From positions 893,378-957,377 of the forward strand of contig RHPI01002069.1 of assembly GCA_009103225.1 (NCBI GenBank): a stretch of 64,000 nucleotides of DNA, read 5' to 3'. Within the stretch, counting starts at the first letter, position 1, and every line of letters begins with the position of its first letter. This DNA comes from Chlorokybus atmophyticus (lineage: Eukaryota > Plantae > Mesostigma and Chlorokybus algae). Below, piece by piece: positions 7,071-56,100 of this stretch. The notes under the pieces were generated by a model. That model was not told the origin of the DNA and searched no databases. It worked only from the letters and a program-made list of their open reading frames with translations. Position numbers and translations under genes: made by a program.

Positions 7071-7550
<480 letters not shown>

Positions 7551-7807: not shown

Positions 7808-9258
7808 CAACAAACTAATACACCTTCTCACTTTAAATATGGCTAATAAACAGCAAGGGCCGATTATTGAGGCACGGCAACTTGCAATTGAAGCATGCAA
7901 AAGTGCATACAATTTAAGCTGTCTGATACATGATGTAAGCACATACTCGCAGCACACGCAATGCAATAGCGCCGTAACGTCGTCGCCAACCATCCAGGGT
8001 ACGCAAGCCACTCTCTACTACAATGATCAAGCCGTCAACCAATGGCTCACACCATGCTCAACATACAGTAGCTATGTAGCTCGCTATAGCAACCCACACA
8101 GAGGGTGAGCAAGCCACTCTTCATTATAATGATCACACCGTCTACTGGTGGCTCACATCATACACAAACAAGCCGCTCTGAGACTAAATATCAACTCATA
8201 CAGTTGCGAGCCAACCACGTGCCAACAACACACTGGGATAAGGACGTCCCTCATAATGTGGTGAGCTGACTCACCTCAGGAGGAATACTCAACTTTGACG
8301 CTCTAGTCATTCGTGAAGGCGGCACATGCTACACATGCTGTTGGTTATTTATATCAACTTTAAAAGCGAGTTGGGTGTTGCATTAACACCGTTGATGATC
8401 GTGAGTGAGTCACTCGCAAAACGCGCATAAACCTTGAAGTACAAGGCAGGCGTGGGCCACAGTGTCGGTTGGCCCAGAGGTTAAGTGCTCACTGTGGCGC
8501 TTCTGTATAGATGACTCACCTCGCCGGGTGTAGGCTTAGCTATTGTGTGTAGCTGCTTTGCTACCAGTTGCTGTGGGCCTCAGCACCAGCACACCACCTT
8601 TGTTGCTTTGCCATGGTATGTGCTTTACCGTCTAACTTTAACGTTGCACTGCTTGTGACGCCCACACTCTCAACGCCTTGCCCCATACACCGTCAGCCCT
8701 ACCCCTGTTGTGTACATGCTATCTGCTTATGCTGTGTGTTGGTGATGTGCTTTGGTCAACCAGTAAGTCTTGCATACACTAAAACTGTGTGCGCTATTCA
8801 GAACGGAGGGAGGAGGGGGGCAGCGAGCAGGCAAGGCAGCTGCAATGGTGAAGGATCACCTGCCATCACCGCACAAGGAATGTACAAACTTGTCATTGAC
8901 ATTGTGTACAGCAACGAATGCACCTACTGGTGGTCTTGTCATCCTTCACCTAGATCCCCCATTTGAAATAGGCCCTTCCAATGTGCCATCACTGGCAACA
9001 CTCTCTGCACCGTCCGCTGAGAATCTGCTCGCTCAGAACCTGCGAGTCACAACTCGAGCAACAAGTGGTGATTCCCCCTCACAACCCGCCACGTCGGACT
9101 GCTGACCGCCGATGACAAAACTCACTCACACGCAGTCCGTCGACCCGACGGCGCCGCGTCGTGCAGATCAATGACTTGACTCTTCGCGGGTCGTTAAGCA
9201 GCAGCGGCCAGCATCCACGGCAACAGCAATAGCGGCAACGACAGTGCTGTCGTGCAGC

Positions 9259-12209
9259 ATGGCGGGGGCGGCGCTGCGAGGGGCGGCGGGGTGCTTGCGC
9301 CAGCTGCTTCTTGCGCGGGCTGGGAGCGGCTTCGGTGGTGGTGGCGCACTTGCGGCGAGCTTCGCGCGCTTGCAGTCCACGGTGAGCACACGCGCATTCA
9401 CTGCATGCTACTGCGCTTTTCTGGGGCGGTCCGCCCGCGCGTTTGTTCCTCTCGCACTGCTTTGGTCGGTTTTGCCCTTCCGTTTCCTTGCGTGCGATCC
9501 GGTGGCAAGGCATGTTTTGGGCACGCTCTCTGCCGTGGCCTGGTACTGCCAGCCATTCAGCATGGCTGGCTGCCAGTCCAACCATCTTCAATTTTCTTCT
9601 GTTGTCGCATGTTCACGCTATCCGTCAGCTGTAACACGCACCTAGCAAGCAACACCTATGTTACAACGATAGCGACATAAGCTTGGGTAGCCACATTGAG
9701 AGACATGGCCTGCGCTGCGGTGCTTTGCATGAGAGAAGCGGTTGGGGTACTGTGCGTCGGCAGTTCTGGCGAGGTAATCAACTGTTGGTAATTGAATACA
9801 CCTGCATTGTTTGTGGACATGTGGACACCTGCATCCAACGTCTGTTCAGCAAAAGTTAAACACGCTTTTCACAAGTGACCGGCTGTTCACTATGTGGTTG
9901 ATTGTCTGCAAAAGAACATCGTTCAGTGCAGCGTTGTGACTGTGGTCAGTTCTTTCAGGTTACAAGCACTTCCTCTGAGCCTGCGACACTGCACGATCCC
10001 GGCAATGACGCTGTGCATTTGCGCGACAACTGGTGCTTTGTTGCGTCTGAGCAAAGGTCCACCTCACCTGTGCAGTACCAGGTAAAAGTTTTCTGTAGTT
10101 TTGCAAGCTTAGATGATTTGCGCTAACCTGTGCCAACAGGTTGCTGTTGCCTCCATGCGTGCAGGGCCGGAATGAGGTATCGAGCTTTGAGAACGTGCCT
10201 AAGCTCGCCATATTGAGAGATATCTTCACGCCTAGCGGAGAAGACGGGTTGAGGTCTGCCTATGAGGTAAGCCGTGCTTGCTTGCACGCGCACGTTCGTT
10301 TGCTCAATTTGCTTATCAATGCTAATCGTGTTGTAGGTGCTACGCAAGCTTGATGAGAATACTGTAGCTGTTCTAGCGTCCGCCACAAGCCCAGCCCGCA
10401 GGTAGGCTTCATTGTCATCAGGTTAAACAGAGGGTAATAATAGAAAGCCAGTATGTGGAGCATCACAAGCATTGGCTTGAAGGTTGCTAGTGGACGAGTA
10501 CATCCGCCATGGCAAGGAGCAGTACACCCTTCAACAGCAAGGAGTGGATCTCATCCGCTACCTGCGCAAGAATGGTGGGCATGCATGCCAAGCTTCCCTG
10601 TTGCATTAGTGCAAGCTCAGTTCTCTCACATGTTGGACATGCAGGGTTCAAAGTCATCATGGAGCCCGACGAGGATGCATTGGGTGCACGTGCCGAGAAC
10701 CGCGCGCCTGTCTTCGAAGCCAGGCAGTCCACGAATCAGGTGCTGATGGTCGCTCCCACCGCTTTCCAGTCCAACGAGCAGGCGGCGCAGGACAACTACT
10801 ACATGGACACCTCTGTGGGCTTCTCGCGCATTGAGCTGCGGCGCCGCGTGCTTGCAGAGTACGCGCAACTGCATCACGTGCTGACCGAGGATGCTGGCGT
10901 ACAGGTGATCATCAGACACTCTTGTTACATGCATGTAAGCAGCACATAATCTTGCCTTGGCTGATCCGGTGTGGCTGGCAGGTGAACTTGTTCGCTCATG
11001 AAGAGTACCACAACGCTCCAGACTCGGTGTTTCCCAACAACTGGTTCAGCACACACATTGGTGAAGGCAATCTTGGAAGTGGTCAAGGCAGGCTTGTGCT
11101 ATACCCGTTCAAGGTGAGTGCTGGATCTTGTCAACAATTTTCATTATGGTCAAGGCGTTGAGTGGTGCATTGGATTGTTGTACCTGGTGAAGCTCGTGCC
11201 ATTGTGGCTTGTAGGTTCCTAACCGCCGCAATGAGCGACGAGCAGACATGATTGATTACTTGAAGAGCTTTGGTAGATATTCAGAAGTGTTGGACTTGAC
11301 TGGCGCTGAGCAGCAATCCACACCGCAATTCTTGGAAGGAACAGGTACAGAACCACAACTGCTCAAGCATTCAAGGAAGGGTTGACACAATGGTACTGAA
11401 GCACACCTGGCAATGTTGTCTACTGACTGATGCGGTTTTCAGGTTCGCTTGTGCTGGACAGGCAAAGGGGCATTGCTTACGTTGCGGTGTCAGAGCGATC
11501 AGATGCGCAAGCTGCTGAGCAGTGGGCGGAGAAGATGGGATACAGTGAAGTGGTTAGTTTCATGGCCACAGACAGCAAAGGGCTGCCGATCTACCACACG
11601 AATGTCATGATGGCCATCGGCACCAGCGTCGCTGTTGTGTGCCTGGAATCCGTAGAGGACCCGGTTGAGCGACAACATCTGCTCTCGCGCCTGCAAGCTT
11701 CCCATGAGGTACGCCTTGTGAGTTGCACGGGTCTCATGAGAGTTGCGTGCAAGGCTGTAAGGCTATAGTCGTTGGCTCGAGCAAAGCGCCTGTACGCGTG
11801 CCTCATGTATCAACAAGTTGCAGTGGAGTGTTGACTGCGATTGTATTCGCACACATCAGCTCCGGACTTTGTCAAACAGCAACCTTCAGCACTACTTTCC
11901 TGCAATGCTTCCTTGCAGCTTGTTCACTTGCACACACACATGCATCATTGCCTGATGTGCGTATGCTTGGCGCAGGTTGTGAACATTACCCGGCAACAGG
12001 CGACCCACTTTTGCGGCAACGTGATTGAGCTGCGGGACGGGAGGGACTTGCCCATTCTTGCGTTGTCCACCGCAGCATACAACGCGTTTACTGCTGATCA
12101 AAAGAAAACCTTGAGAAAACACTTGGCCGCTCTGCATCACGCACCCATTGATACTCTCGAGAGGGTTGGTGGTGGCGGAGTGCGCTGCGCAATAGCAGAG
12201 GTGTTCTGA
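9259..12209 (+). CDS. amidinotransferase-superfamily (pentein) hydrolase, CtlX/arginine-deiminase-like, with a probable organellar targeting peptide (multi-exon)
   Basis: STNQVLMVAPTAF, PDSVFPNNWFSTH, FLEGTGSLVLDR, IYHTNVMMAIG, FCGNVIEL, ERVGGGGVRCAIAEVF (catalytic Cys); first exon MAGAALRGAAGCLRQLLLAR is Arg/Ala-rich with no acidic residues; joining of the 5' exons is inferred. Confidence 0.85.
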
Positions 12210-32496: not shown

Positions 32497-35400
32497 ATGG
32501 GGCAGCGGACGCAGGTGATGAGGCTGCTGGTCGGCTTGTGCTGCCTGGTGGTGGCTGTGGTGGTCGGCCGGCCGCTGTACTACCTCATGCTCGACAGGCT
32601 GGGATCCGTGCGCTACACGCTGCCAATCTGGCAGCAACCGCTTCCAGGTGCGCTTGATTGCGCCCCATTGACAGTGACAGACCGTCAGCAGGGCCTGCAT
32701 TTCCAGAGACTGGGACGTGGCCTAGCCGTCTTCTGATTGCCTTGCGCTTGCACGAATTGAACAAGTACTGCTGATTAGGCTAGAAGCATGCGCAAATGCT
32801 GATGCACGCAAGCGCAAAATTGGGCATGGTTGACGATTGGTCGTTGTCGCTGAGTAGCAGCACTTGAGCGAACAGCAGATTTCTGACAGGAGCATGCTCG
32901 TGAGTGTTCCTGACGATCGCATATAGCTTCTTGCGTTGACTGTAGTAATGGCACCAGAGGCTGACTGCTAGTACAGATGGAGCAACATATCACTCATCAC
33001 CCTTACGACAATTGATTGTTATTGTTAACAAGTTCACACACTCAATAGCAATTGAACCGCTCGCGTCATGCCGTGTACTGCTGCGCAGTTGCAGTCGTAC
33101 AACCTGCTGCTGCTAATGGCACAGCAGCTGCGCCGAGCCCCGCCACAAAGCCAACGCCACAGCCAAAGATGAAAATTATTGTGCCTGGGTCAGAAGCAGT
33201 GCAGTTGGCGGTGGGCAAGAGCAAGGTTGAAGATGCCGAAGACCTGTTTGCCAAGGGCTACGTTCTCCCGCGTCCCAAGAACACTCCTCTTCCTCCCATG
33301 CAGGAGTTCTCGCTCTCGCGGGAGCTCATTGCAAAGCATGCAAATGAGCGTAAAGACATCCTCGTCACATTTGCCAACCTTGCTTACAAGGACTTTGTTC
33401 TTAATTGGGTTTCCCAACTGAAGCAGCTACATGTCCACAACTTTATTGTAGGTCAGTGTTTTGCCTATACTGCTTTCGGCTTGCTGAGCAAGTGGTCCCT
33501 GTTGCAATCGCTGGCAAGCACTTGTGAATACGTTCAACCTCGAGCAGGTGCGCTCCATGATGAGTTGCTCGAGGACCTGTATAAACTGGACATTCCATGT
33601 TTTGCGATGCATAGCAAGCTGTCCACCCAGGACTTTGGTTGGGGAACCCTGGAGTTTCACAAGTCCCAGCGACAGAAGGCAAGTGTCTTGCGTTGTAAGA
33701 CCTTGGTGATGTATGCAAGCGGCCTGTTGTGCGCGTGCAAGGCAGGTTGCTGTTGGTCATGCTTGCTACCCGGGTTGGGTTCAACACCTTGCGCATGTAA
33801 GCAGGGGTTGTCTAGCGCTTATTTACAGTCCACCTATCTGCTTGCAGGTCGATCTCGTGCGTGCATTTGTGGAAATGGGCTTCAACATATTTTTCTCAGA
33901 TGTTGATGTGGTGTGGTACCAAGACCCTCTGCAGTATGTCACTCGATATCCAACAGCAGATGTGCTCATATCAAGTGACCACCTTTCATCAACCTCCAAG
34001 AATGGTTCACTTGAGGAATATCAGGCAGGTATGGGTTGTGCGTGTTGTCAGACACCAGTTAGTTGAGATAGGCCCACTGTTACTGACTGCTAACATGCAG
34101 CTTATGCGGCTGCAGCCTACTCAACCATGAACGTCGGCATCATGTATGTGCGCGCCGTGGATCCCTGCAAGAATTTACTGAAGCAATGGAGTCAAACTGT
34201 AAACACAGACCCCAACTACTGGGACCAGGCCGCGTTCAATGACATCATCAAGCAAGGCATGGCACCGTTGCCAGCAACAGAGCAAGGCACAGAGCAAAAT
34301 GTGTTCATGGCGTACAAGCAGCAGTTAAAGATGGGGATCCTTCCTGTCGGCACGTTCTGCAATGGCCATACATACTTTGTACAGGTACGTATATGCTACA
34401 TGGATGAGACTGTATCAGTGGCGTTGATTGACGTGTTGATTGGTCAGTTGATGGTTGCACTGATGTGTGTCACAGGGCATGCCTGGCAAGCTGGGCTTGC
34501 AACCATATGCTGCACATGCTACATTTCAGGTATGTGGCAACAAGCTCAACCACGTTACCGACAGTAATTGCTAAGTTTTAACCTCTTAAGCGAAGGTAAG
34601 CAACTGATCAACAGCATGCGCTTCCAGTTTGGTGGCACTGAGGGCAAGCGGCATCGCATCAGGGAGGACAAACATTGGATAGATGACCAGGCATACCACA
34701 ACCCTACAGGTATGTTGTCAGCGTGTTTAGCGATAACCTACAACTACCATTACTACATCATTGCGCGCAAATGTTCGGACTCACTGTACGGTGTTCATCA
34801 GGTGGGCTGTTGGTATACAACCCAGATATACCCGGTGAACTCTTGCATGAAGGCCCCCACACATTTGAGACACATTTCAAACTAGTGAATTACCAGGTAA
34901 GTCAAGGGTTTACAGTGAACGACCAGTACAGCACCATTCAGTCGTTGCCATCTTTGCAAACCTGACATCGACATCGTCTCTCTCTTACTTTGGTTGTTGG
35001 TTATGCGAACTGCTTGCAGTTGACGCAGATACGAACGGCTTTTGCCTTCGCCACAGCGTTGGGGCGCACGATGGTAAGCATTCAGCCACTGGCGCGGACG
35101 CTCATGTTTCCTTCCTGGTTGTTGCTCAGCCATTGGGCAGTAAGCAAGCTTACGCACAGCTCCTCAGGTTATGCCCGAGCTATGGTGTAGAGTTGATCGT
35201 TACTGGGCACCACATGATGGAATGATTCCTGGGTCAAGAATTGATCAGCCATTCCGTTGTCCATTGGACCATGTGTTTGAAATCCCCAATTTGCTAAGGC
35301 CATTGCCAGAAAGCGAGTACGGCCCTAACATCCCCTTTAGGGAGTATTCGTTCTTCTCAAACCCTCGCACGCCTCTGAAGGTACCGGGCTTGCCGACTTC

Positions 35401-36099: not shown

Positions 36100-37666
36100 C
36101 TGGCACAGTGACTTGTGCGTAGTAAAGTGTTCATGTACTATATCATTATTCGTAGAGTACAAGGGTGCAGATAGCACGTATTTGACCTTAATGCCAACTG
36201 CTGATAATGAGTCAGCATGTTCGCCACCAGGTCCTGGTCCGTTGTGCTGTGTTGTGCTTAGAGCATCATGCCATTGTCTGCAGTATAAGGCATATCATAT
36301 GTCAAACAGCAAAACCCTATGCATGTTTTTCCTGACAGCCTAACTCCAACGTGCTGCCCACCCCAACACACTCAATCACATGAGGTGATCAACTCCTGCT
36401 CCTGATTGCCTACTTGTGCTGTTGATATTGCTATTGCACTTGCAGTTGGTCTACCCTGTTAATGTGAGCTGATCAGTTTCGCGCATATGTGGATACCACT
36501 GGATACCGTACACTACATGCACTGCAAGGCGTATAGGCTGACCATCTATCGCTGATACAATTGCACACCACAAGCATGCACAGTCGCACAGCAGCGCAAG
36601 GACAGGCAGCACAGCAGAGGCAAGCGCAATGGGTTGACCACGGTAGGGGCAGCTAGACTAGATGCATGCACCTACCTCAGTGCATGCAAGGCGGAGGGCA
36701 AGGGAACAGGCAAGAGCAAGTGGCGGACCTGACGCAAAGCAGGCGCTGGGTCAGTCCTTGGCCGCAACCTCCACAGCAGCAACAGCAAGGAGAGAGGCAG
36801 GGCGGTGAGGGCGGGATGCTGTGCTGCGTGCTGCGCACATGGCCAGCTGCTGCGCCGCCAGCTGCTTGTAAGGGCTTTAGGGCAAACATATGTGTGTGTG
36901 CATGGTGCAAACGTTAAACACTCGCATGTGACTCAGCACTTGCGCAAGAAATCTACCAAGTAGTTAACAATATCTGCAAATTTAACAACTCTAGCGTTAA
37001 GGGGGTAAGCAGAGACTAGCTATTTGCAATGCACTCAGGAGCAGGCAGGCAGGCGTGGGTGAGGCGAAATGACAGCCCTTGTCCCTGACAGCCCTGTGCC
37101 ATTGCGACACTGGTGTCTGTACATTTACCACTGGATCTGCACGTGCGCGGTCCACGCTGCATTTACACAGCTGGAAGTGTTGGTGTACACCAAATGGGGC
37201 CAATTGTTCGCACGCTTCTCCCATCAGTAGTGGTGGTTGTTGAGCTATGAGTACGTTGTGAACACTACATAGACATTCTAGGCTGCCTGTGTTTGCACTT
37301 GGTTTGCTGCGGTGCTGTGTGTTGCTTCAGTCAAATAATGAGCCTTTGTACAAAAATACACAACATAAGGTGTAGTAGTGTTCGTGTCAGCCCATGTCGT
37401 CGACGACAGCACAGACAGCAATTGAACACGCACGCACCACAGCAGCTGTGTAGGTGACTACCACTGCCGTTGATGCATGCAAGCATGACTGACACGGGGC
37501 GGTAGGAGTAGGGGTGGAGTAGAGGGTAGAGTTAGCCCGGTGGTCGTGTACGGCGGCATTGAGGTGCGTGTGGTTTGCTGTATGTCGTGCACGGCGTTGT
37601 AATGCATGCTGTTAACAGCCTTGCGGTTATCCTGTACGCCCTCGCACACACACGCGCGCACACATA

Positions 37667-37704
37667 CGCACGGACACGGACACGGACACGGACACGGACA
37701 CGCA
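37667..37704. repeat. (ACACGG)n hexamer microsatellite
   Basis: Direct reading. Confidence 0.85.
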
Positions 37705-38544
37705 CACGCAGGCACACGCTTGGGTTAGTCCAATGCTTAAGCATTCAGTGCAAGCGAGCGAGTAGGGTGCTGTGCTGGTAACAGTGCTGACAGTGCTGCT
37801 ACCATCGCAGATTGTGAGCGATGGTGGAAGCAGTGCACCGGGGGACGGCAGTGGCCGGAGGAGAGGGAGGATAAAGGAGCGGAGGAAGGGAGGAGAATTG
37901 GTCGGCTGTCCAATGCTGCCACGGTTGTGCTGTAAACATTGAGGAAAAAGACGTACCGTGTGCAGGTCATTCAACAGGATTATGGGCAGTGAGAAAGTAG
38001 GTAGATAGCTGTATACATAGCCCGGTGGTGGGGCTGTAAACATTGGTCCTGTACAAAACGTGTATGCTGTCGTGTGATGTGACTGCTAGTCATGCATGTT
38101 TCAGGCTTGTGACAATCATGCCATTGCAATTTTTGTACACAAAGCACTGCGTTGGCACTACCTTGTAATTTACACATTTACACATATACATTACAGTCCC
38201 GGTAGGTGCAGTCATTGGAATGCTGAATAGCTTTAATGGCACTGCTGTAGTGGTGTTGTTGATGAAAAGACCCCTCGTTTGTGGTCGACTCCCTTGCGTT
38301 AGCAACGAGTGAAGAGGTGTCATGGTTCAGGGTATAACAAGCCCTCACCCGCTATCGCAGCAGCACGCTCCCAAGCAGAGCATAGATGCGGGAAAGCAGC
38401 ATGCAAGTCGTTGGGCCAAATCTGATTTCCCAAATCCAATTTCCCACCAAGAATCCGTCACTAATATCCCCTCACACAACCGGTTTACACCAGCCACTAT
38501 ACACACACACATTCAACAGCGTTCAGCGAGCATAGTTCAGACAC

Positions 38545-41170
38545 TCAGCTTGCATACAACATCTTGTGTGCAATTGGCCTGTCGACAAGCTCCAACACTT
38601 CGTTGTAAACATCCAACGTCAGGAAATCGTCGAGGCGGGGGCTTGTGCACTGCTTGTAAAACATGTCAGCTGCTTTCTTGTACGGCATGCTCGTAAAGCG
38701 CTTGGCGCCAACCTCACGCTCAATGGTCTGCATCTCCTCCGCAAAGATGCGGCCCAACAACTGTGTGGTTACCTGCCAGCGCATGCACGTCAGGTGCAAA
38801 CCGACCACAACCAGCTAAAGTATTAAATCAGCTCATTTAAAAAGCAGAAACTCTGCAGCGTCTTCTAAATCAAGCACGCGTACCTTGTGTTCTCCGTCAA
38901 GCATGGCACCATACCGCAGCCATTGCCATATCTGAACACGGCTGATTTCGGCGGTTGCAGCATCCTCCATGAGGTTGTAAAGTGGCACTGATCCAGTGCC
39001 AGTCAACCACGCTGCAATATACTGAATGCCGACACGCACGTTCGACCGCAGGCCGTCCATAGTTCGAGTACCCTGTGGCATCTCCAAAAGGTCCTTTTCT
39101 GTCGCCTGCAGGATGTTCATGTTAAGCAAATGAGATAAGCAGTGATGAGCAGCTAACGAGAGAATCTTTTATACCTTGACATCTTCACGCTTCACTTGCA
39201 GCTGGTTTGGGCCACGCATATGCTGGTTGAACACCTCCGTGACCATTGGAACCAACCCTGGATGAGCTGCCCATGTGCCGTCATGTCCCGCCTTGACTTC
39301 GCGCAGTTTGTCGGCACGCACCTGAGAACATTGCAAATGCCACATTGATTATGCTATGATTGTTTGCAGTTTGACAAGTGCAAATTAATTTGCCCATGTG
39401 AGAACTGGATGCGCCACAGCAGTTAGAACACCTTGGCAGCTGCAGCCTCATTGGCAGCCGAATCATCCTTGATGGGAATCTGCGCAGCCATCCCTCCCAT
39501 AGCATGGACTCCACGCCGATGACATGTCTGGATGAGAAGCTCAGTGTAGCTCTTGAGGAAATGCTGTGTCATGCCAACCTGTCCTCGGTCTGGCAGCACA
39601 CGGTCTGCATGACCCTTAAATGTTTTTATAAAACTGAAGATGTAATCCCATCGTCCACAATTCAGGCCAGCTGAATGCTCGCGCAGCTCGTACAAGAATT
39701 CATGCATCTGCGGACACAGCAAAGCACATGGACACCTGAGGTACAGCAACAAAACGTGCCAATCCAAGCACTCAGCGCTATAGAACAGCATGACCCCGAA
39801 CGCATGGATGCCAGCGTACCTGGAACACAGCTGGCAGAGTTTCTATGAGACAAGTTGCCTTGATGCTGCCCCTGGGAACTCCAAGCCTGTCTTGAGCATA
39901 GTTGAACACGGCATTCCACAGCGCAGCCTCACGATGGTGTTGCATTTTGGGAAGATAGAAAAAGGGACCAGCTCCACCATGTTGAGATCGAAATGCTGCC
40001 TGATTGTGGAAGAAGTACAGCCCGAAATCCACCAAGCAACCAACAGCAGGGGCTGCATCAACTTCAAAGTGGTCCTCTGGCAGATGCCAACCACGGGGTC
40101 GCACAAAGAGGACTGCGGTCTTTTGGTTTAGGGTGTATGTCTGCAGGTCGTAACATGTACAAGTGGTTGAGTAAGCTCTCTTACGACTGATGGGGGTCTG
40201 TTGTATCATGCAATCCTGTATGCATATGCAACATGACTTCTCATGCAGACAATGTACCTTGCCCCGAGCCTTGTCCTCCAAGCTGATGGTGCGATTAATA
40301 GCATCGCGAAGGTTGATCTGCCCCTCAATTACATTTGCCCAGGTAGGACAAAGGGAGTCCTCAAAGTCGGCCTTTTTGAAACACTACGGTAAGAATTCAC
40401 CCAAGTACCGACAGGAGATTTGCAGCAACAACATGATTTCCTACCCACCATGAACACTTTCGCGCCGCTGTTCAGTGCATTGATGACCATTTTGCGATCT
40501 ACCGGGCCCGTAATCTCAACTCTACGATCTGCAATGACGTCTGGTGTCGGAGAACAGCTCCATGCTTCTTCACGAATGGGTCGTGTGTTGGGGTCAAAAC
40601 CCGGGAGCCGACCAGCATCATACCGAAGCTGCAACTCGCATGAGCACCGTCAAAAGCAGGACAGAAACACAGCACCAACCAACCGCATGTGCAAATCGGT
40701 GTACGTTGTGCGACTAGGTGCCAAGCATGATCCCAACCAAACCACACTGTCAGGCAGCATTCTCAAGCGCATGGCTGCAGCAACGTGAGCTTTGCCTGTA
40801 TAATTAGCAGCAGCACCACAGAGCCATGAGAGCCCGGCATGCTCAACAGCAAGCACGTGGTGAACAGATCATGTACTATACTGCAAGCTAAAATCACCAT
40901 GCTGCATGACCAAGACGATTATTGGATTGTCGACAGCTTGCCAGCAATCACTGCGTAACGCTTGCATTCACAGAGCAGTACAACGCAGCAACTCACCTGA
41001 GCTTCCTGTCTCCTCTCCAAGGCAGCCTGCACTCGGGGACGGAAGGTTCGGACGAGCTCAGTGACAAAAGAGATGGCCTCGCTGGTAAGTATGGTGTCGT
41101 AACCCGGACGCATGGGGCCCCTGATCCTCACTCCCAGCGGGGGAGGAGGCGCATTGGTAGGAATCGCCAT
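38545..41170 (-). CDS. MAS1: malate synthase A (glyoxylate cycle, multi-exon)
   Basis: [10 protein letters not shown]; [23 protein letters not shown]; [10 protein letters not shown]; [11 protein letters not shown]; GPFFYLPKM; [14 protein letters not shown]; [15 protein letters not shown]; [11 protein letters not shown]; [20 protein letters not shown]; DFLTLDVY. Confidence 0.97.
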
Positions 41171-42575
41171 GTCGTGAACCCCTCCAACTGCTCTCCCGTA
41201 CGCAACACCAACCCAAATATCCCGCTGCACCCAACGAGGCGATCTATCTTTCGGGAAGTATAGCAGCAATGCTGCGGCCCCCGACAGCAACCAGCACAGC
41301 AAAACCTCCGCCCCTCAGTGACTCAGCACTACCGACCTGCGCGTCGCTCATGAAGATATCTCGTTTAGCGTTGACATCCTAATGTTAAGCACATCAGCAG
41401 TCAGATATCGCTGTGCTCAGCGGATCAGCACGACTGCTGGGGGTGAGGCCGCGGAGTCAACCTGCCACATCACCGCTGCGCACGCACTTTCGTGCTTACC
41501 CGCACTAGGCCGGTTATGCTGATGTCACAATGACAAGACGATGACGCCCATCCGGACGCTTTCCTCTACGATGATGATCGTCATGTCGGCTTGTGCGCTC
41601 GTGGCTTCAATCCATAAGTTTGGTAAGAGGATGAGCAACGCACAAGGTGGCCTCCTTGTGCGTCCAAACGGATGGGCTCGAAAGCCACGTTGGAAGCCGC
41701 ATTTGGCGGCAAGGTGCGTGCGTCGGGGTATCGCGGTTTGAAACCGAGGGCCTTGATTGGGCAAAGACAACCGTGCATTGCGTCATTGAGCGTATTGTGC
41801 CAAGGATAGAGATTCTGACAACGACGGATGCAGATTCCGCCTAGCACGAGCCGGGCAAAACATCGTTTGCCAAAAGCTGGTAGCTGTGTTGATATCTGCT
41901 GCGCAAGAGCGTGGCTGCAACTTGTTGGGTGAGAGCAGAAGTCATGAGACTACTTTCTCAAACTCATGCCAAAGTACTGATGGCAATGTGCACTATGGGT
42001 ACCATCGCCTAGTACATGATGAGGCGATACTCACATGAAGTTTCTGCATAATGAAAGTCAACGGAAAGGGCCTTGCTGATATCGACGGGAGGGATGTCGT
42101 GGCGCCACGATGGCTCGCGGCTACGGCTAAGCTCGAAGGCTGCTGTCGCTTTTCGACACGCGCGCTTGATGATGGAGATGGCGGGGGGGGTTGCGTGCCA
42201 CCGTGGCGGGGCGTAGCTGACACGTCGTTTGAGTTTATCCCCATGCCACCCCCGCTTGGGCACGGACCCAGCCGCCGGCCGGTAACGACTACCACTCCCG
42301 GCCACAGGCGGATAACCACGACGCTGACGCTGACGGCAACCACGCGGCAACCGACGCAGCGACAACGTAGCTGCTAGCAGTAGTAGTGTTGAGCTTAGCA
42401 CGAGTTTAGCAGCAGCGGTTGTATATATTCAAGCCTAGTGCACAATAGTTGACAGGCAAAGCACACGGTGCGTTTTGTGCGGCAAGTGTGTGAGGCTTTT
42501 GTGTGAAGCTTGTAGTTGCTTGCAAGCAGAGTGTGCTTTGGCTTTGGGAGCGAGCAGCAGGTGTGTGAGGTCAAG
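41171..42575. promoter_or_regulatory. divergent intergenic region between malate synthase and isocitrate lyase (includes both 5' UTRs)
   Basis: ATG-to-ATG distance about 1.4 kb; TATATA at 42422-42427 upstream of ICL; no recognisable intervening gene; shared-promoter function is inferred. Confidence 0.6.
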
Positions 42576-44301
42576 ATGTCGCAGACAACCACCATTTCCA
42601 GGACGGCCGTCAGCAACGGCAGCGCCATGGCCAACGGCAATGGCAATGGCAAGATGGCCCACGGCCTCCCTTCTCGCTTTGAGGGCATCAAGCGGGACTA
42701 CACCGAGAGCGATGTGGAGCGCCTGCGCGGCTCTGAGCGCGGCCGTGTCGAGCACAGCCTTGCTCGCCGTGGCGCTGAGAAGCTGTGGCGCCTGCTGCAC
42801 AGCGAGCCCTACGTCCCTGCCCTTGGCGCCCTCTCCGGCAACCAGGCCATGCAGATGGTGAAGGCCGGTCTCAAGGCCATCTACCTGTCCGGCTGGCAAG
42901 TGGCTGCCGACGCCAACACTGCTGGCCAGATGTACCCTGGTGAGCACCTTATCTCTGCATTGCACCTGTTTTCTTTGTGGTTGCAGTCGCATTCTTGATG
43001 GTCTTGTTTCAGCTTGCACAGATCTTGTTGACAGCAGTATGGCATTGTTTGCACTTCTGGGGGACGTTTGGGCTCAGGCACAATGCTTCATTGTGAATGC
43101 CGCTTCTTGCGTGGCTGACTATGCTGTTGTGATTATGCAGACCAGTCGCTCTACCCTGCGAACAGTGCACCTGAGCTAGCCCGCAAGATCAACAGGACCT
43201 TCCAGCGCGCTGACCAGATCCAGCACTACGAACGCTCCTCGGGCATCAGCGACCTCGACGTTGACTACTTCGCACCCATCGTGGCTGATGCTGAGGCTGG
43301 CTTTGGCGGTCCACTGAACGCCTATGAAATCATGAAGAACTTCATCGAGGCTGGCGCTTCTGGTGTGCACTTTGAGGTGAGGTCGTCTGCTTAGGCTTGT
43401 CTTCAGCTTAGCTGAGTTTTTGTTTTCTCTCTTTCTTGTTACCTTGGCTATGGAGTAGTTCCTTGCAAGGCCCTTGCTAATACTAATACTCGTGTGCTCT
43501 CAGGACCAACTGGCTTCCGAGAAGAAGTGTGGCCACCTTGGTGGCAAGGTCCTGATCCCCATCCAGCAGTTCCTCCGGACGCTGAATGCTGCACGCCTCG
43601 CTGCTGATGTTGAAGGCGTCCCTACCATCATTGTTGCCCGCACAGACGCTCACTCAGCAAAGCTGCTGACGTCCGACATTGACGAGCGCGACCATCCCTT
43701 CATCACCGGCGAGCGCACCGCTGAGGGGTACTACCGCATCAAGGAGAGCTGCGGCGTTGACTACTGCATTGCACGTTGCCTAGAGTATGCCCCCTATGCT
43801 GACCTGCTGTGGTGGGAGACCTCTGAGCCCAACATGGAGGAGGCCGAGAAGTTTGCGCGCGCCATCCATGAGAAGTACCCCGGCAAGCTGCTGGCCTACA
43901 ACTGCTCACCGTCCTTCAACTGGAAGGCCAAGCTCAGTGACCGTGACATCGCCGACTTCCAGGAGAAGCTTGGCGCCATGGGTTACAAGTTCCAGTTCAT
44001 CACCCTGGCTGGCTTCCACTGCTTGAACTACCACATGTTCGACCTCGCTCAGAACTACCGCGACTATGGTATGTCTGCATACTCTGAGCTGCAGCAGAAA
44101 GAGTTTGGTGCTGCTCCTCGCGGCTACACGGCATCCAAGCACCAGCGCGAGGTGGGCACCGGGTACTTTGACGCTGTGTCGATGGCCATCACTGCGGGCA
44201 AGTCCTCAACCACTGCCATGAAGGAGTCGACAGAGGCTGCCCAGTTCCAGAAGGCGCACTACCAGGCGACAGTGTCAGTGCCCGCTGCGTACGCTCTATA
44301 G
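42576..44301 (+). CDS. ICL1: isocitrate lyase, short bacterial-like type (exons 42576-42939, 43141-43376, 43504-44301; 465 aa)
   Basis: [16 protein letters not shown]; [14 protein letters not shown]; MYPDQSLYP; [12 protein letters not shown]; [20 protein letters not shown] (catalytic KKCGH); [10 protein letters not shown]; [12 protein letters not shown]. Confidence 0.98.
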
Positions 44302-46689: not shown

Positions 46690-48204
46690 CTTGGCGGCAG
46701 CATGTATGCCTCAAGTCTCTGCACTCTGCAGCTGCCGCTGCGGCTCGCTCTGGTGCACAGCGGTCGTTGCAAGCGTTCGCGCGCAAGGGTAGGCTCACTG
46801 TGCCCAGCCGCAGCACAGCATACAACGACAGCGACAAGCGTAGGTGAGTGAGGAGTCTAGTCGTAAGGATGCGACAGACTGTATAGTCTCGCACGCACGC
46901 ATGCACGCACACATGCACATGCAGTGCGCCATGCAACAGCTTGTGTTCCACAGTGGGTTCTGTGAAGTTGGGGGAAGACAGCAGGCACTTAGAGCAGCTG
47001 GTGTTGGAGGGAGCAAGGGTGACGCACCTTGCGCACTGGTGCGTGTGGCAACGCGGGCCTTCTTGTACATGCATAAAGCTGCCGTACCTTGCGCATGCGC
47101 ATGGAGAAGCAACTTGCTCACGGCATTTTGTGTTCTCGTAATGCAGCATTTGGCAAAGGGTTCTTCGACCAGGGGACATGGTGATTGATGCTACTGCCGG
47201 CAACGGCCACGACACGCTTAAGCTTGCACGGACCGTTTTGCACTCGTCCTTGGTGTGGTACTTTGGTGAAGAGATGCTAAGCAAGTTTGACATTCTTGTC
47301 GCTTCTACCATGCCATTCTCAGTCAACTGAGACTGTGTTGACAGGATGGTAGTGAGGAGCTTTGCGGAATGGTGCATGCGCTTGACATCCAAGAGGACGC
47401 CATAAGCACAACAAAGTGGCGACTGCAAGAAAATCTTACATCCGCTCAGGTTATCCGCTTGTACACGGCATAGCATGCGTGTTACTATTGCGAAGGTGCT
47501 GTGCTGGAGCCAGCCAAGACCTAGCTTTTCTTTTTTGTGAGCAGATGGAACGAGTGCATTTCACACGTTGCTGTCATTCGCAACTCGACAACATGTTTCA
47601 GGCCAATACTGCCAGGTGGGCATGCGATGTTGTATGGAGTTGGTCAAGTAAGCACTCGCGTGTGTTAACTTACGGTTTCCTTTACCGTCATGCTGCAGGC
47701 TAGTCTGTTTCAATCTGGGGTACTTGCCAGGCCTACCAAACCAGCGCGAGGTCCGCACGAGCGCAGACACAACCGCGCAAGCGGTTCAGGGCGCATGCCG
47801 CGTGCTTGCGCCAGGAGGCTTGCTGAGCGTCATTGCGTACATTGGACACCCTGGTGGGAGGTACGCATGCTTTGGTCATACTGATGCCATGCGTGGTTTG
47901 ACATTGTCAACATGCACTGCATCGGTATCACATTCACTGTTTGTGCCTGTATACACGGGTAAGGTGATAGCTCGCGCAGTTTACTATCACACCGCTTAAG
48001 AATGGCACATGCAGGGAGGAGTATGAGCAGGTTTGCGAGACACTTGCTGCTCTGCCAATGAACGAATGGGTCACCAGCCACCACTGCTATCTGAACAAGG
48101 CACTCAGTCCGAGGCTGCTACTTGCGCAGAAGAAGGCTGATTCCGGGGGGGCAATTGCTGAGGTAACAGCTGACGTTTCGGCTGAATGGTTGCTCAAACA
48201 CTGA
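46690..48204 (+). CDS. SAM-dependent methyltransferase, MnmM/YtqB (putative rRNA methylase family)-like; start uncertain, may extend 5'
   Basis: RVTHLAH|..VLRPGDMVIDATAGNGHDTLKLA; ALDIQEDAI; LVCFNLGYLPG; LAPGGLLSVIAYIGHPGG|EEYEQV. Confidence 0.85.
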
Positions 48205-49187
48205 TCCGCAATGCTGTCTGGCAAGCTGGCATGCATTGCTACTGTTCAAACTCATGCACTATTTCTGCCACCTATAATTGATGCTATGCGAGGGCGATGA
48301 CATGCTGACAGCATCTTATAGGATTGGCACTTTGTAGCATGATGGTACATGCAACGCTGCTTGCCATCCACATGTGGTACGTCATAATAGTAGACAGAAG
48401 GTCTACCTGTTGTATGAGAGGCAACTTAACTAGCAACATGACCACGCACTTGATAGCTCCAACAGCGGAATCCATCGATGATGTCTTGTTGCATCCGTTT
48501 CTAACTCTACTGTACTTTTGCATAATGTATAAGGGGTATGGTACGGTGGCAGCATGTGTGTTGTTCATGGTAGGATTGTCTCCTATTGTCTCCTCTAGAT
48601 GCTACACTCATCTGGCTCCTGATCTTTGAAGAAAACCCTTCTAGATTTGTCAATACTATCTGCCACCACAATTTACAGGGAACCTGTACTAAGCTCCAGA
48701 GTGTTGGCAATATGTACACGGAGTGCAGTTGCTTACCCAGTACACATGCAAGTCCTGCATTGATGTACATAGAATCACAAGGTCGTGCAGAAATGTCGTC
48801 CTATGCCATGTGTGGGTGCGTGGCATGATTGTGCTCGCGGAAGCATTAGGGCTGGCCCAAGCACACATACCGTGCTTGCAGCCACCTGCACATGCATGAA
48901 GTGGCGCGGCATAACCCGTCACCAACAGGCAGTCAGCACACTCTCGCAAAGTGAACAGGCAGTGCTAGCTGTGGTGCGCGTACACTCAAGAGGAAAGACA
49001 CCCAGTACACCGCACTGCTAGACTGAGTGCAAAGAAGTGATGAGCGCAGCAGGGCGCTGGACAGGAGAACAGGCATCTTGAGCCCAGTCTATCATCATTT
49101 AAAATGCTATCAGCCGGACTGAGAACAATCCATACACGCCCTACAGCTCTCTACAGCTCACTGCAAATGGTGCTCACACGAAGCAAT

Positions 49188-52100
49188 CTAATCATCTAGG
49201 TAGTAATAGGTGCCAGCAAGCTTCTGTTCCCTGTCTTTTGTTGAGTCCATCTTGTTGATGCGCGGCCTGTAGTTGGTGGGATCTCTCCTGAAGGTAATCT
49301 CCAGGTTCTGCACACCAGGAAGGACAGTAGTGAGTACGAGACCCTACCTCATAACAGAGTCAAGCTTGAGTGAGGGATGCATACCGATAAGAAGAGGTTC
49401 ATGCCGGTGATCAATGACTGTGGTGTGTGCGCTGTGCAGTCAATGGAAGGCGTGCCATCATAAACAATCACTCTGTCAGCCAGGTAGGTGGCCATGATGA
49501 AGTCGTGCTCCACAATAAAGGCTGTCTTCTTGGCGTGCAGGATGAAGCGCTTGATGACCTTGGCAGCAACAATGCGCTGCTCTGAATCCAGGTACGCACT
49601 TGGTTCATCGATCAGGTAGATGTCTGCGGGCTGCGCGCATGCACAAGTGTCAGCTGCCTTTTTCTTGAAAGGGCCAACACCACTGATGATCACGTGCTGA
49701 CATGCTAATACCACAACTGACCTGACCAAGGCAGAGTGCAAGAGCAACGCGCTGAAGCTCTCCACCAGAAAGGTGGATGACCTCCTGATCCATCAAGGGG
49801 TCGATCTGCAACCAAATGGAAGTTGTTGCAGTGAACAGCAATCCCTAAACCTGCTGGCAACAATGCGGCTAAAGTTAACCTTGCACGATATGAGCTGGCT
49901 TACCTGCAAGGGCTTCATGACATCGGTGTTGAACTGAGGGTGGAGGTACGATTCCCTAATCTTCTTATGTAGTAACAACCGCACCTGCATTGCCATAACC
50001 AAGGGTAGGCGTAAGTGCTCAAAACTGTACGACCGTAGATTGGGCTTGCAAGCAACTCTTGTGACACGTCTGGTGCGCAATAAATGCCGTTGATAACAAC
50101 TGTCATACCGTTCCCGCAAACTTCGGACTGATCTTCTGGGGTTTGTAGCTAACATTGAACTCCGGCACTTCAGCGCGATCGTCATCATCAGGCTTCAGCA
50201 AGCCGGCAAGCATGCGAATGAACGTTGTCTTTCCAGTACCATTCTCTCCAAGCATAACCACAATCTGGGAATCAGTAAAGTCCCCCTCCTCAACATGTAA
50301 GTGGAAATCGCCCTGCGTTTTATCCATCTCCGGGTAGTGGTAGCGAGCGTACGACTTGATCTCTTCCTCCTTCTCATTTACAACCTCAGCCACTTTGAAA
50401 GTGAGTGACTCGTCTCGGAAACGCAGGTTCTCCGTAGGCACAAAGCCCGCCAAAAAAATGTTGATGCCCTCACGCACAGAGAACGGCAACGTGACAACAC
50501 CATATGCTCCAGGCTTGCCATACAGACAGCAGATAAAGTCCGAGAGGTAGTCCAACACGCTCAAATCGTGCTCGACCACAATAACATAGCTGCCAAACAC
50601 GAGAATTGTCCCATGAACCTGCCAAGACAAAGGACAATAGGAAAGATATGTAGTTGCAAGACTGCACCTGGTTGGGTGTAGGAGGCTGCGAATCACACGC
50701 GCTGCTTTCAACCTCTGCTTCACATCCAGATAACTTGAAGGCTCGTCAAACCTGAAACAGTGAAGCAATCTGCATCTGTACAAGTACCTCCAGCACTTAT
50801 TTGAGGACTTACATGTACACGTCCCCCTGTTGCGCAGCAACAACAGCAATTGCAAAGCGCTGTAGTTCTCCTCCTGAAAGGTTTTCGACAGCCCGATCGA
50901 GCACTTGTTCAAGATCTGCAAACCAGACATTGTTACACTGACTCGAGACCAACAGCGGCGACAGCAAACAGCGCGCTGCCTGCAAACCGGGGTCGGCTGT
51001 TGCAAAAAAGTATTGTGACTACTGCAACTTACCCAAGTCCTCAAGCAACGTCTGCTTGACATCCCGTTCATTCTTCTGTTCAAGTACCTGCACAACAAGC
51101 GCGTCAGCTGTGCCTGCGTAATTAACATACTGCTCTACTAAGCTTGATACCCATTGCTTATTTTCTCCCAGTCGACATACCTCCCCAACATTGCCTTTGA
51201 CTGCCTTGGGGATGTGATCAACATACTGCGGCTTGATAATGGCCTTGAGATTGTCCTCAAGTATGCGCGTGAAGTAGTTTTGCAATTCTGACCCTCGGAA
51301 GTTGGTCAAAATTTCCTGCCAATCTGGAGGGTTCTGCGCAACACCGCATCGCTCAGCATGTGACCACACTGGACATCGCAAGCCGCCGATTGTGCAAGCT
51401 AGCCTTTGCATGGCGCGTGCACTGAACTTACGTCAAATCGTCCAAGATTGGGCTTGGTCTTGCCAGCCAAAATCTTCAGTGCGGTGGATTTGCCTATGCC
51501 GTTGGTGCCCACAAGTCCTAAAACCTGACCAGGTCTTGGAACTGGCAACCTGCGGAGCCAGAAAGTCAAAAGCCTCCCAATAAGTAAATCATGTGACCAT
51601 CAAATCAGCAGGAAAGTGCTCTACACGCATGTAGTGCCACAAGACAGACACAACAGCATCGCAGATGCTAAGTACCTGTGCAACTTGAATGTGTTTGGAC
51701 CATAGCGATGTGTTGTGTCTTTAGCCAAGTCCTTGGGCAAGTTGATAATCTGGATTGCTTCAAACGGGCATTTCTGTAAGCGCAAGCTTGTTCAGTTTCA
51801 CATGCAAATATGTATATGCACCATATGTGCGTTCAATGGCGATGCGGAACATGGCACTGACCAACGAGAACGGAGAGCTGGACTCACCTTGACGCATATA
51901 CCGCAACCTATACAAAGATCTTCAGATACCCAAGCGATCTTCGAGAGAGATGTGACCTCTATGCACAACTTGCCTGCAGCCAATATCCAGCTATAATCAG
52001 CGTGCATGCGACTATATCTCCTAAGGGAACAGTGTAGAAATGTTTGCCCAAGCGCAGCAATCCATGCCACAGGCATGACGATGCAATGCAGTGGCTTTGC

Positions 52101-52674
52101 TTCCCCTCTTATGCTCGACTGGACTCAGCTGCATAGCAATCTGTTTGTTGCAAGTAAATTTTGTATGCTGCTTCTGCAACCACCGTTATCCGAGCAAACT
52201 GTTCCATGCAAAGAGACGCTTTGTCGTTAACACAGGAGAGCTTTTCTTGTGACTACAGTAATTGGAAAACGTTCTTGCAGGCTAAAACCGTCATGGGTAG
52301 CACTAGCATTTCTCTTACGCACATAACATGCATGCACGTACGTAGCTACCTAAGTAGATGTGAGTGCAAGACACCTCAGCGCACATACTGACGAAGGACG
52401 AGCACATACAACGAGATGCATGCACTGCGCTGTTAGTGTTTGACCACAACACCACGACACAAACCAGAGCAGCACAGACGTACACCACACATGCTGTGGA
52501 GGAAGCATGAATAGTTTCCGACGTGTGATGGCATGAGTTATCCCACAAAGTGTAATAGGCACACTGCTTACCAATCTTCACGACAGGACAGCTCTTCTTG
52601 CACTCCTGTCTGCATTTTTTGGGCTTGCAGCGGTCCGCACTGACTATGGCAATACGTGTCAACTTCTCATCCAT
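49188..52674 (-). CDS. ABCE1: ABC ATPase ABCE1/RLI1 (Fe-S ribosome recycling factor, multi-exon)
   Basis: [25 protein letters not shown]; [13 protein letters not shown]; GTNGIGKST; LSGGELQR twice; [12 protein letters not shown]; GENGTGKTT; [12 protein letters not shown]; [16 protein letters not shown]. Confidence 0.98.
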
Positions 52675-53148
52675 CGCTGCTGCCTGGGTGGGGAGGGCAC
52701 CCCCAACAACCCTCCCAGCAGCAACCTCCCACGCTCAACCACCAGCAGCCTATAAGCCCAAACACTTTGTAGACTGGAAGCAATCAGCCCAGCTTATGAA
52801 ACGTACAAGTATCCCCTAAACCCTTTGCCACCACCGCTGCTCCTTACAAGACCAACCTCCCCACTCCTGCTGCTAACGCCGGCGGCGGCGGCAGCACCAA
52901 CACCGCTGTAGTGTTGGCAGAGTTAGGGTTTCTGTTCCAGGTCGACAGAAGTGAAACAGACGATCCAGAAGCTCCGACCCTGGATGTATAACCCCGATCA
53001 GTCACAAAGGCGATCTATCGACCCGGAAATCAAGCCCGAGCGCCCCTGGCTTGCGTTGGCGCCATCCATCGCGGTCTTGTCGTTGGTGTCGGTGTTGGTG
53101 TTGGCGGCGGAGGAGCCGGCGTAGGGTTCGGAGGGGATCGGTGGAGTT

Positions 53149-56100
53149 ATGGAAAGCCGTGAGACTTCCGAGTTGAAAGCTCTGAGCACGTTCGTGTCGG
53201 TGACCAACGCCGATCCGGACGTCGCCAGACGCATCCTGCAGGTCAGTGTGTTATGCCACTGCTGCCTGTCTGCCCCTTCTGTCAAAAAGGGCGTCGTGCC
53301 TTTGCTGGCTTCTGCAACTTAGATTGAGACAGGATTGACACCTCTCAGTGATTCCTCACAACGAGTGACGATTGTCTTGTAGATCTGGATTGTACTTGGT
53401 GCATGGAAAGCTGCCTGGTATTCGCTGATGGCTGTTGCTTGAGTGCCTCGTCATTTGCTTGTGGCAGTTGGACTAGTGCATGCCAAGTGTTACAACAGCA
53501 GTAGCATGGACAGCTCACATGAACACGGAAGGTTGTGTTGTGCACTAGTGCACTTGTGCAATGTTGTGTTAGCATGCAGATTTGTTTCTAACCGTGCGCA
53601 TGTTGCATACTTGACACGGTGTATTTCAGCTCTTTCGGCCGCCCTCGTGCGCGCTTTACTGTTTTATCTGTGCATATGGACGATGGCCTGTTACGTACCT
53701 CCGTGCACAGCCATCTCTTGAGACTGCTTGCGCACACACCAACAGCATCTTATGCCCATGGATGTTGCCCTCATGGAACTTGCACACCAAGTCTTTTTGC
53801 CTTGCAGGGCCATAACTGGGACCTGGACACGGCAATCAATCTGTACCTGGAGAATGACGGCAACATAGATACCATCCCACCAAGGTGCAAATCAGTCAAT
53901 CGTTTTTTACAGCAGCCTCTGCTTCTGCCGAGCAGCAGGTGTCTGATGTTGTAACATCGCTGCCATGCAGGGTGGTCGATTTGGAGGCTGAACAAGAGGA
54001 GGCTGGTTTTGGACCTGCGCCTAGTTTCGGCCCCGCGGCTCAGCCTCGAACAGTTCCGGCGTCTTCAACCCCACCCTACCACGTTGAAGTGCCGCATCCG
54101 GACACCGCAGCTAGCATGGATGCTGAACCCTCTGTACCCAGCAATACCAACATCGTGGATCTCACCGAGGAGGACAATGCGATAGAAGAAGAAATGCTGC
54201 AAGCTGCACTAAATGCGTCACGTGAAACAGAAGGTACCTGCATGTCTTCTTCCTTGATGCATGCATGTAGCAGCTGCATGCAGTGAACGGTAATGGGTAA
54301 CCTGCTGCTACAGCTCGCATGCATGTACTCTTTCAGTGTGCCATGTACATTCTTGTTTCAATATCAACTACTAAGCAGGCACAGTGCCCCAAGAAGGCCT
54401 GGCAGGACATGCGGATGACGAACTTGCCCAAGCCATTCAGCAGTCTTTGCAGGTTAGCCTCATACCTGTGTCGAATGCTGGGTATGCATGTGACTTGCTG
54501 TGTGCATGCTATACAAGGTTACTGCATGCGGCATTGATTTGTAAGCCTCTTTGGGTCATCTGCCTATCAATTGTGCTGGTACATGGTTGGCGTATCTATA
54601 CCACACAGTAGGTTTGAGTGTTGATAGGGTGGTTTACACATCTGCCAGCAGTACCAATGCTTTATGGACCGTGCAGCAGGAGCAGTTGGGTGCCGGTGAT
54701 AGTGCAGAGGACCTGATCGCAGAGCCCGCTGCTGCCGCCGAACTATCAGCACCGGCCACTCAAAGCGGCGGACAACGACAGATGAGTAGCGTGCGCTGGC
54801 GGCCACTACCAGTCGCGCATCTGGGTCCAGTGGAGCAGCGTTCACGGGCGACAGGTGGCCTTTGGGGTGATCATCAGGACGTTGCCGAAAATGGTGCAGT
54901 TAGGCCACTCCCTTCACGCCGTCCAGACCCGAGCAGACCTCTGTTTACGCAAGAGCACGACGCAGCAGCGCGCAGAGGCCGCGCGCGCCGCAACATGGAT
55001 ATTGAGCGCGCCCTCCCAAGCAGTCTGCCTGAACGTTCAAGCTTTCAGGACATGAGTGATGATGATAATGACGATCACGATGATGAAGCCGTGCCCAGTT
55101 ACGCGCATCATGGGCGCGGACGAAGACCAGCATGGCAAAGGCTTCCCCAGTTTGCGAATGGCGCGGCGCAGTCTGATGAAGATGGGGATGCCCCGGGACC
55201 AGCGCCCAACCCGGTAAGCTCCTTTGCAGCCAACCGTATTCCAGTGTTGTGCATGTACAGATGAACTGACCTCGCTTCCACATGTGCAATAGTTGGAGTT
55301 TCCATCGCTCTCATCTGCTGAGCAAGAAGAGGCTGCCATGCTGGAAGCTGCGCTGTTTGGCACCGCGTACCGGCCACCAGCTGGTCATCCATACTGGAGG
55401 CTAGGAGCGGCAGCGGGCGCCAACTCCCATTCTCCGCCTTCCTCCAGTTTGCTGGCTGAGCGAGAGATTCGACAAGAACAGGTGAGTTAAAGAGGGAGGA
55501 TGGCTTTCAGTGTTTGTTGCACTGTGTCATGACCACTTGTCTGCACATCTTGGATGCACTCAGCAGCGGATTATTTGAACGGTTGTTGTTTCCAGGATGA
55601 TGCATACCAGCAGTCGCTTGCAGCGGACCGTGCCAAAGCAAGGGCAGCAGAACAAGCGCAACAAGAAGTACGCAGGGCAGAAGAACAAGCGCGGGCAGAG
55701 TCAGAGGCTGAAGCACAGCGCCTGCAACAAGAGGAAGAGGTATGCCACCAAAAACGCATCGAGGTGGTGTCCAAAGAAATCCAAGGCACCTGTGTTGTAG
55801 TACTTCCACCATAATAGCGTCGCTGTCCGTATGCCTTGTGTCGGCTGCTTGAAGCTTGTTTTGCCTATTCAGGAGTTGAGACAGCAGATGCTTACCAAAT
55901 CCCAACGGTTGTCCAAGCACGGAGAGCCAGATGCATCTGCTCTGGGTGCTGTAAGGCTGTTGGTTCGCATGCCAGATGGAAGTAGGTTGGAAAGGCGCTT
56001 TTTGCGCGACGAGCCTTTGCAGGTAGATCGCTACTTGCACGTGCTTCTGTACTGGGATTGAGCCCGCCATGGTGTGGGATGCGGCTGGTGATTAAGCCCA

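Follow-up and report, generated by a model that had tools for sequence, protein, structure and literature searches.

Head-to-head genes for malate synthase and isocitrate lyase in the nuclear genome of the alga Chlorokybus atmophyticus

A 64,000-nucleotide stretch of the Chlorokybus atmophyticus genome (contig RHPI01002069.1 of assembly GCA_009103225.1; the whole stretch is called the window below, and positions refer to it unless another contig is named) carries the genes for malate synthase (MS) and for its partner isocitrate lyase (ICL), the two enzymes peculiar to the glyoxylate cycle. The analysis confirmed that these genes form a genuine, spliced and expressed divergent pair in the nucleus of this alga. 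MS is read leftward and ICL rightward from a spacer of ~1.03-1.11 kb which itself gives no transcript. On balance, and with modest confidence, we favour the view that this genuine pair exemplifies a head-to-head linkage of ICL and MS that recurs in distant eukaryotes, and that the most likely reason for which such a linkage arises or persists is a shared upstream region that would let both enzymes be switched on together. Joint switching would be favoured because ICL alone would release glyoxylate, with nothing to consume it. The spacer may act as one bidirectional regulatory unit which responds to acetate or lipid. Shared regulation of MS and ICL is plausible.

Gene models, transcripts and the spacer

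The first-pass annotation of this DNA had named both genes, described them as divergent and put their start codons about 1.4 kb apart. Pfam searches and exon models upheld all three points. MS lies on the reverse strand and ICL on the forward strand, and the distance from ATG to ATG is 1,405 bp (41171-42575). The coordinates of all features are collected in Table 1.

The ATG of the MS gene (41170) and its stop codon (38547-38545) were read from the sequence and checked by a script. Pfam domains on the reverse strand between 38548 and 41302 follow each other in the order MS_N, MS_TIM-barrel (in three pieces), MS_C (in two). On successive exons the scores were 51.9 bits for PF20656, 138, 151 and 58 bits for PF01274, and 100.8 and 33.7 bits for PF20659. 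Thus, all three domains pass their gathering scores and stand in the right order, as in a malate synthase A. All similarity comparisons of MS were made exon by exon; exon 4 matched the structure of malate synthase 3cux with 129 bits and that of malate synthase A 3cuz with 111 bits.

The ICL model equals the protein P0001 (jgi/Chlat1/2199/Chrsp17S02759, 465 aa), with 100% identity in its long third exon and the same length. The Pfam family ICL (PF00463) was found on the forward strand between 42576 and 44298, with 33.3 bits on exon 1 and 228.3 bits on exon 3 at a cut-off of 26, and likewise on P0001. The catalytic K-K-C-G-H loop (KKCGH), which is invariant in the ICL alignment, is present at the start of exon 3. 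Bacterial ICL structures of 430 aa aligned with the Chlorokybus protein in one stretch with 657 bits, and fungal ones of 540-560 aa in two stretches with ~270 bits; an insertion of ~100 residues, present in the ICLs of plants and fungi, is missing. By these comparisons the Chlorokybus enzyme is a short form of the bacterial type.

Transcription was followed in two independent RNA runs, X1 (2013) and X2 (2021); a further run, X7, is DNA-like, and the data of all runs consist of contigs. The exon borders are canonical GT-AG throughout both models. Spliced contigs of X1 and X2 join the exons across all nine introns, seven in MS and two in ICL. Since each was recovered at exactly the modelled borders, both genes are transcribed and their models are correct. 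The MS contigs extend at the 5' end to at least 41343 in X2 and at least 41307 in X1, and the 3' untranslated region passes 38400 and runs ~270 nt further in record 1 of X1. ICL is covered at its 5' end from 42454 by the deep contig of X1 and from 42373 by the thin contig of X2. The ends of the contigs, which do not show the true transcript starts, are therefore 1,029 bp (41343 to 42373) or 1,110 bp (41343 to 42454) apart. Pfam searches, exon models, RNA contigs and searches for tRNA and Rfam RNA revealed no gene between MS and ICL. A hidden tRNA or other RNA gene in the spacer was rejected, as neither a tRNA nor an Rfam match was obtained there. X7 covers only parts of the spacer core.

Table 1. 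Positions of the malate synthase and isocitrate lyase genes, their transcripts and the intervening spacer in the window
Feature	Position	Strand	Remarks
Malate synthase A, coding part	38545-41170	-	8 exons, 7 introns, 553 codons + stop
Malate synthase exons 1-4	41170-40997, 40628-40449, 40371-40258, 40140-39820	-
Malate synthase exons 5-8	39707-39432, 39321-39175, 39105-38884, 38772-38548	-
Malate synthase transcript, contig extent	38400-41343	-	RNA contigs; lower bounds, not true ends
Spacer core	41344-42372		no RNA contig in X1 or X2; ~1.03 kb, ~1.11 kb if taken to 42453
Near-perfect palindrome, 26 bp	41638-41663		repeat search; arms of 13+13 bp, complementary to 92%; close to mid-spacer
Isocitrate lyase transcript, contig extent	42454-44399	+	RNA contigs; continues ~160 nt past 44399
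Isocitrate lyase, coding part	42576-44301	+	3 exons, 2 introns (phase 1, phase 0), 465 codons + stop
Isocitrate lyase exons	42576-42939, 43141-43376, 43504-44298; stop 44299-44301	+

Recurrence of the arrangement in other eukaryotes

MS exon 4, searched against the whole library, led to a set of readable contigs, two of which (the metagenome contigs L084 and L087) are eukaryotic and the rest bacterial. Both eukaryotic contigs (2/2) carry ICL and MS head-to-head. On L084 the ICL ATG lies at 2251 on the reverse strand and the MS ATG at 3305 on the forward strand, 1,053 bp apart. This contig is eukaryotic, together with L083 from the same organism: its genes are split by low-complexity introns and DAD1 and a PRMT adjoin. 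The PRMT gives a weak hint of Viridiplantae, whilst a query with the MS fell in bacterial clusters. On L087, a 100-kb eukaryotic contig which also holds CFAP300 and an XPD-like helicase, ICL occupies 7183-5078 on the reverse strand and MS starts at 8001 on the forward strand. L085, L086 and the contig that carries P0252 were rejected as eukaryotic evidence: they are bacterial and show either glycolate-oxidase surroundings or an operon of the aceBA kind.

The ICL of L084 is of the short type, with 66-73% identity per exon to the Chlorokybus protein and 75-79% to other bacterial ICLs. The ICL of L087 is of the long eukaryote type and shares 50-58% identity with ICLs of stramenopiles, rhizarians and chytrids. 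The ICLs of Chlorokybus, L084 and L087 are not orthologous and come from different lineages. Such non-orthologous partners point to repeated origin or long retention of the linkage under selection.

The same layout has been described in animals. In Acropora the ICL and MS1 genes are reported to be "aligned head-to-head", with conserved synteny (PMC4083563). The anthozoan pair (Acropora digitifera, Nematostella vectensis) resembles that of Chlorokybus in that the genes are adjacent, nuclear and head-to-head and encode a bacterial-type ICL; among the anthozoans the arrangement is conserved between genera (PMC4083563). It differs in belonging to an animal lineage and in that the MS of Chlorokybus looks plant-like and not bacterial; the likeness is one of layout. 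The arrangement is thus already on record for animals, and Chlorokybus adds an algal member; in the literature searched, linked ICL and MS genes were not reported from any alga, and no paper tied Chlorokybus to isocitrate lyase. Consequently, the novelty claimed in the first-pass annotation was overstated, as head-to-head ICL/MS is described in anthozoans (PMC4083563) and recurs in L084 and L087. Its proviso that the linkage might already be documented as widespread applies in part: the linkage is documented and recurrent, and its distribution is patchy.

One adjacent pair of pathway partners in one genome is not significant alone; its recurrence in 2/2 contigs is. This recurrence is best accounted for if the linkage arose repeatedly, or was long retained, under selection for joint control.

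Fusion of the two enzymes was also encountered. Proteins in which ICL is joined to malate synthase were found in Balamuthia mandrillaris (P0488, 1196 aa) and as Logan P0486 and P0502. Since these come from an amoebozoan and two Logan assemblies, fusions exist outside nematodes and Euglena, in which bifunctional ICL-MS proteins are known (see PMC1630690). A further, more tentative step, to which we give rather less credence than to the account favoured above, would regard head-to-head ICL/MS as a eukaryotic two-gene regulon, repeatedly evolved or anciently retained, which occurs with non-orthologous ICL types in a streptophyte alga, two protists and anthozoans and forms an intermediate stage on the way from unlinked genes to the fusions seen in nematodes, Euglena and Balamuthia. 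If true, it would rank among the clearest cases in eukaryotic nuclei of convergent selection for physically linking the genes of a two-enzyme pathway.

Alternative explanations and the origins of the two genes

The alternative that survives best is that MS and ICL are accidental neighbours, brought together by ordinary rearrangement, each with its own promoter and without regulatory meaning in their adjacency. Divergent pairs are frequent in compact algal genomes and comprise 15-29% of conserved genes in Trebouxiophyceae (PMC6141220). By our own estimate, a few pathway partners should lie side by side by chance in a genome of about ten thousand genes.

Several observations weigh against shared control, and some of these fit such an accident. 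The spacer has room for two promoters: with ~1.03-1.1 kb between the contig ends it is at or just over the usual 1-kb cut-off for bidirectional promoters, and at this spacing two separate promoters fit equally. The crude MS:ICL depth ratios disagree between the runs, with 538:997 in X1 and 43.8:11.7 in X2, although contigs give neither expression levels nor transcript starts and the levels of MS and ICL are not comparable between runs. A k-mer comparison of the Chlorokybus, L084 and L087 spacers gave no motif common to all three beyond chance. Moreover, ICL stands without an MS neighbour in Nannochloropsis salina, Ectocarpus sp. and Pythium oligandrum, the genomes reached by a search with the ICL of L087. 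In Chlamydomonas, as the first-pass annotation had stated, the genes are unlinked by their identifiers, with ICL1 (Cre06.g282800) on chromosome 6 and MAS1 (Cre03.g144807) on chromosome 3. Nor are the two genes known to be linked in Arabidopsis (At3g21720, At5g03860) or yeast. Several eukaryotes, for example Chlamydomonas, co-express ICL and MS from unlinked genes, and the lack of linkage in four eukaryotes means that co-expression does not need it.

Nevertheless, an accident confined to this one genome is unlikely, because both eukaryotic contigs to which MS similarity alone had led, L084 and L087, share this head-to-head layout, and it is reported in Anthozoa. The chance adjacency of one specified pair amounts to ~2 in 10,000 per genome.

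A second alternative, distinctly less probable, is that the pair is the relic of a joint acquisition of bacterial aceA and aceB which gained introns later, so that the linkage is historical and not selected. The short, bacterial-type ICL agrees with such an origin. In the ICL tree the proteins of Chlorokybus and Mesostigma (P0008) and three unnamed transcripts form a clade (SH-aLRT, Shimodaira-Hasegawa-like approximate likelihood ratio test, 89) whose sister is one protein from a metagenome-assembled genome, and this clade is placed inside alphaproteobacteria-like sequences. A profile of the clade, aimed at chlorophyte ICLs, retrieved among its best 120 matches the clade itself and then bacteria, and led to no annotated green-algal genome. 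The anthozoan ICL is bacterial-like too (PMC4083563). Since Mesostigma shares the clade, ICL is old in this lineage.

The linkage in bacteria was surveyed in the 80 loci closest in ICL (66-74% identity), in which malate synthase A was counted within 10 kb. It was present in 25 of these 80 loci. One of the 25 pairs is divergent, with a 1.7-kb gap; the other 24 are co-directional, in either order, which speaks against inheritance of the present layout. No MS is present on the contig of P0006, the bacterial ICL most similar to that of the alga.

The two genes also differ in their relatives. The best bacterial matches to MS (65-66%) belong to Thermoanaerobaculia, Myxococcota and Chloroflexota, those to ICL belong to Alphaproteobacteria. 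The best MS match in the library-wide search was a land-plant fragment from Acorus calamus, with 69% identity for exon 4 and 65% across six exons. In an MS tree with a row for each exon, four of five rows (exons 2, 4, 7 and 8) stood beside this plant sequence, with support absent for such short rows. The genes are strongly unlike in style as well, as had been noticed before: ICL has two introns and a G+C fraction at third codon positions (GC3) of 0.76, MS is intron-rich with seven introns, all verified in the spliced contigs, and a GC3 of 0.57. Finally, L087 shows the same layout with an ICL of the eukaryote type. In these comparisons nothing supports a joint bacterial transfer of ICL and MS. 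The earlier argument against a recent joint transfer therefore stands: the closest bacterial ICL contig lacks MS, the ICL groups with Mesostigma, and the MS exons fall, without support, beside plant MS.

An assembly artefact that wrongly joined the two genes in the scaffold is barely credible: among the run contigs examined no independent one bridges 42132-42372, a G+C-rich segment with a G run, but unspliced X7 contigs matching at ≥99% run from MS exon 1 across 41187-41644 and cover 41973-42131, an RNA contig carries the 5' end of ICL up to 42373, and such an error is unlikely when two unrelated assemblies show the layout as well.

Comparison with known systems, neighbourhood and further observations

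Joint control of these two enzymes through their gene order is familiar from bacteria. In Corynebacterium glutamicum aceB (cg2559) adjoins aceA (cg2560); the genes are divergent and share an intergenic region with sites for the acetate-responsive regulators RamA and RamB. The mechanism proposed here for Chlorokybus, a shared acetate-responsive intergenic region, would be of this type. The C. glutamicum pair is prokaryotic and free of introns, with an intergenic region of ~0.6 kb and known regulators. Operons of the E. coli aceBA(K) type also link the same two enzymes physically for joint control. They are co-directional and polycistronic, whereas the two genes of the alga diverge, are monocistronic and undergo splicing; with opposite strands and separate spliced mRNAs the Chlorokybus pair is no aceBA operon, which would be co-directional with one transcript. 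The fused ICL-MS proteins represent an extreme solution to the same need, an equal and joint supply of both activities, with one polypeptide and one promoter, while Chlorokybus makes two proteins from opposite strands. Fungal FAS1/FAS2, K. lactis LAC4/LAC12 and histone H2A/H2B are likewise partners in one process placed head-to-head around one intergenic control region. For these pairs shared control is experimentally proven; for Chlorokybus it is inferred.

Eukaryotes are usually said not to cluster genes of primary metabolism. ICL and MS, which are unlinked, head-to-head or fused depending on the lineage, offer a compact natural series in which to study the conditions that make selection favour linkage, and with the Chlorokybus pair a photosynthetic, early-branching streptophyte joins it. 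The spacer of ~1.1 kb is short enough to be tested as a carbon-source-responsive bidirectional promoter and could become a tool for algal engineering. The short bacterial-type ICL of Chlorokybus and Mesostigma, as opposed to the long type known from land plants and fungi, bears on the question of which ICL the green-plant ancestor had.

The genes around the pair are unrelated to it. A nucleotide-sugar transferase (nucleotide-diphospho-sugar transferase, ~34127-34564, forward strand) lies on the MS side at 33-35 kb. A few kb downstream of ICL, at ~48000-53300 on the reverse strand, an intron-split ABCE1/RLI gene was recognized by Fer4_RLI, 4Fe-4S and ABC_tran pieces. Among the larger open reading frames within ~10 kb there was no citrate synthase, aconitase, malate dehydrogenase, acetyl-CoA synthetase or carrier, nor any other gene of the glyoxylate cycle, of acetate metabolism or of peroxisomes. 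A larger glyoxylate or acetate cluster was rejected, as the neighbours are unrelated and the ABC protein is ABCE1/RLI and not a peroxisomal ABCD importer. With two genes the locus falls short of a eukaryotic metabolic gene cluster, that is, at least three non-homologous genes of one pathway. Because the flanking genes are unrelated, the signal is the pair itself and not a larger cluster. The G+C content is ~50%, and its profile around the pair is unremarkable.

The repeats in the spacer are all small. The most regular one is the 26-bp palindrome, a candidate site for a regulatory factor. The Chlorokybus and L087 spacers have in common the 13-base word ATACGCTCAATGA or its complement (41786-41798 in Chlorokybus), which does not occur in L084. 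Between these two spacers two shared 12-mers were found where 0.07 were expected.

In Nannochloropsis salina (contig L088) the ICL gene (6192-7214, reverse strand) stands head-to-head with a gene of the mitochondrial-carrier family (8001-10173, forward strand). The carrier could be of the succinate/fumarate type and hence another functional partner of the cycle. On contig L081 (1-1320) the bacterial ICL nearest to the algal clade adjoins a divergent pair of HTH_3 and Peptidase_M78/ScfRs regulators which is RamB/ScfR-like. We take this pair to represent the RamB/ScfR-type control of alphaproteobacterial glyoxylate genes.

In run X2 two contigs that match at less than 90% lie on ICL exon 3 (43674-44182) and continue into unlike, G+C-rich sequence. 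They probably derive from a bacterial ICL in that culture or from a diverged second copy.

The introns of the MS gene (38773-40996) are all in phase 0, so that every exon consists of whole codons. Seven of seven is unusual, with a chance of ~1 in 100 if about half of all introns are normally in phase 0. Both Chlorokybus proteins end without a canonical tripeptide of the type 1 peroxisomal targeting signal, MS with ...YAS (38548-38580) and ICL with ...YAL (44270-44298); the MS of the L084-like organism has the C-terminus ARL or ARM. Downstream of the MS 3' untranslated region, at ~37600-37720, lies a (TG/CA)n microsatellite whose open reading frames translate into RVRVRV and HGHGHG.

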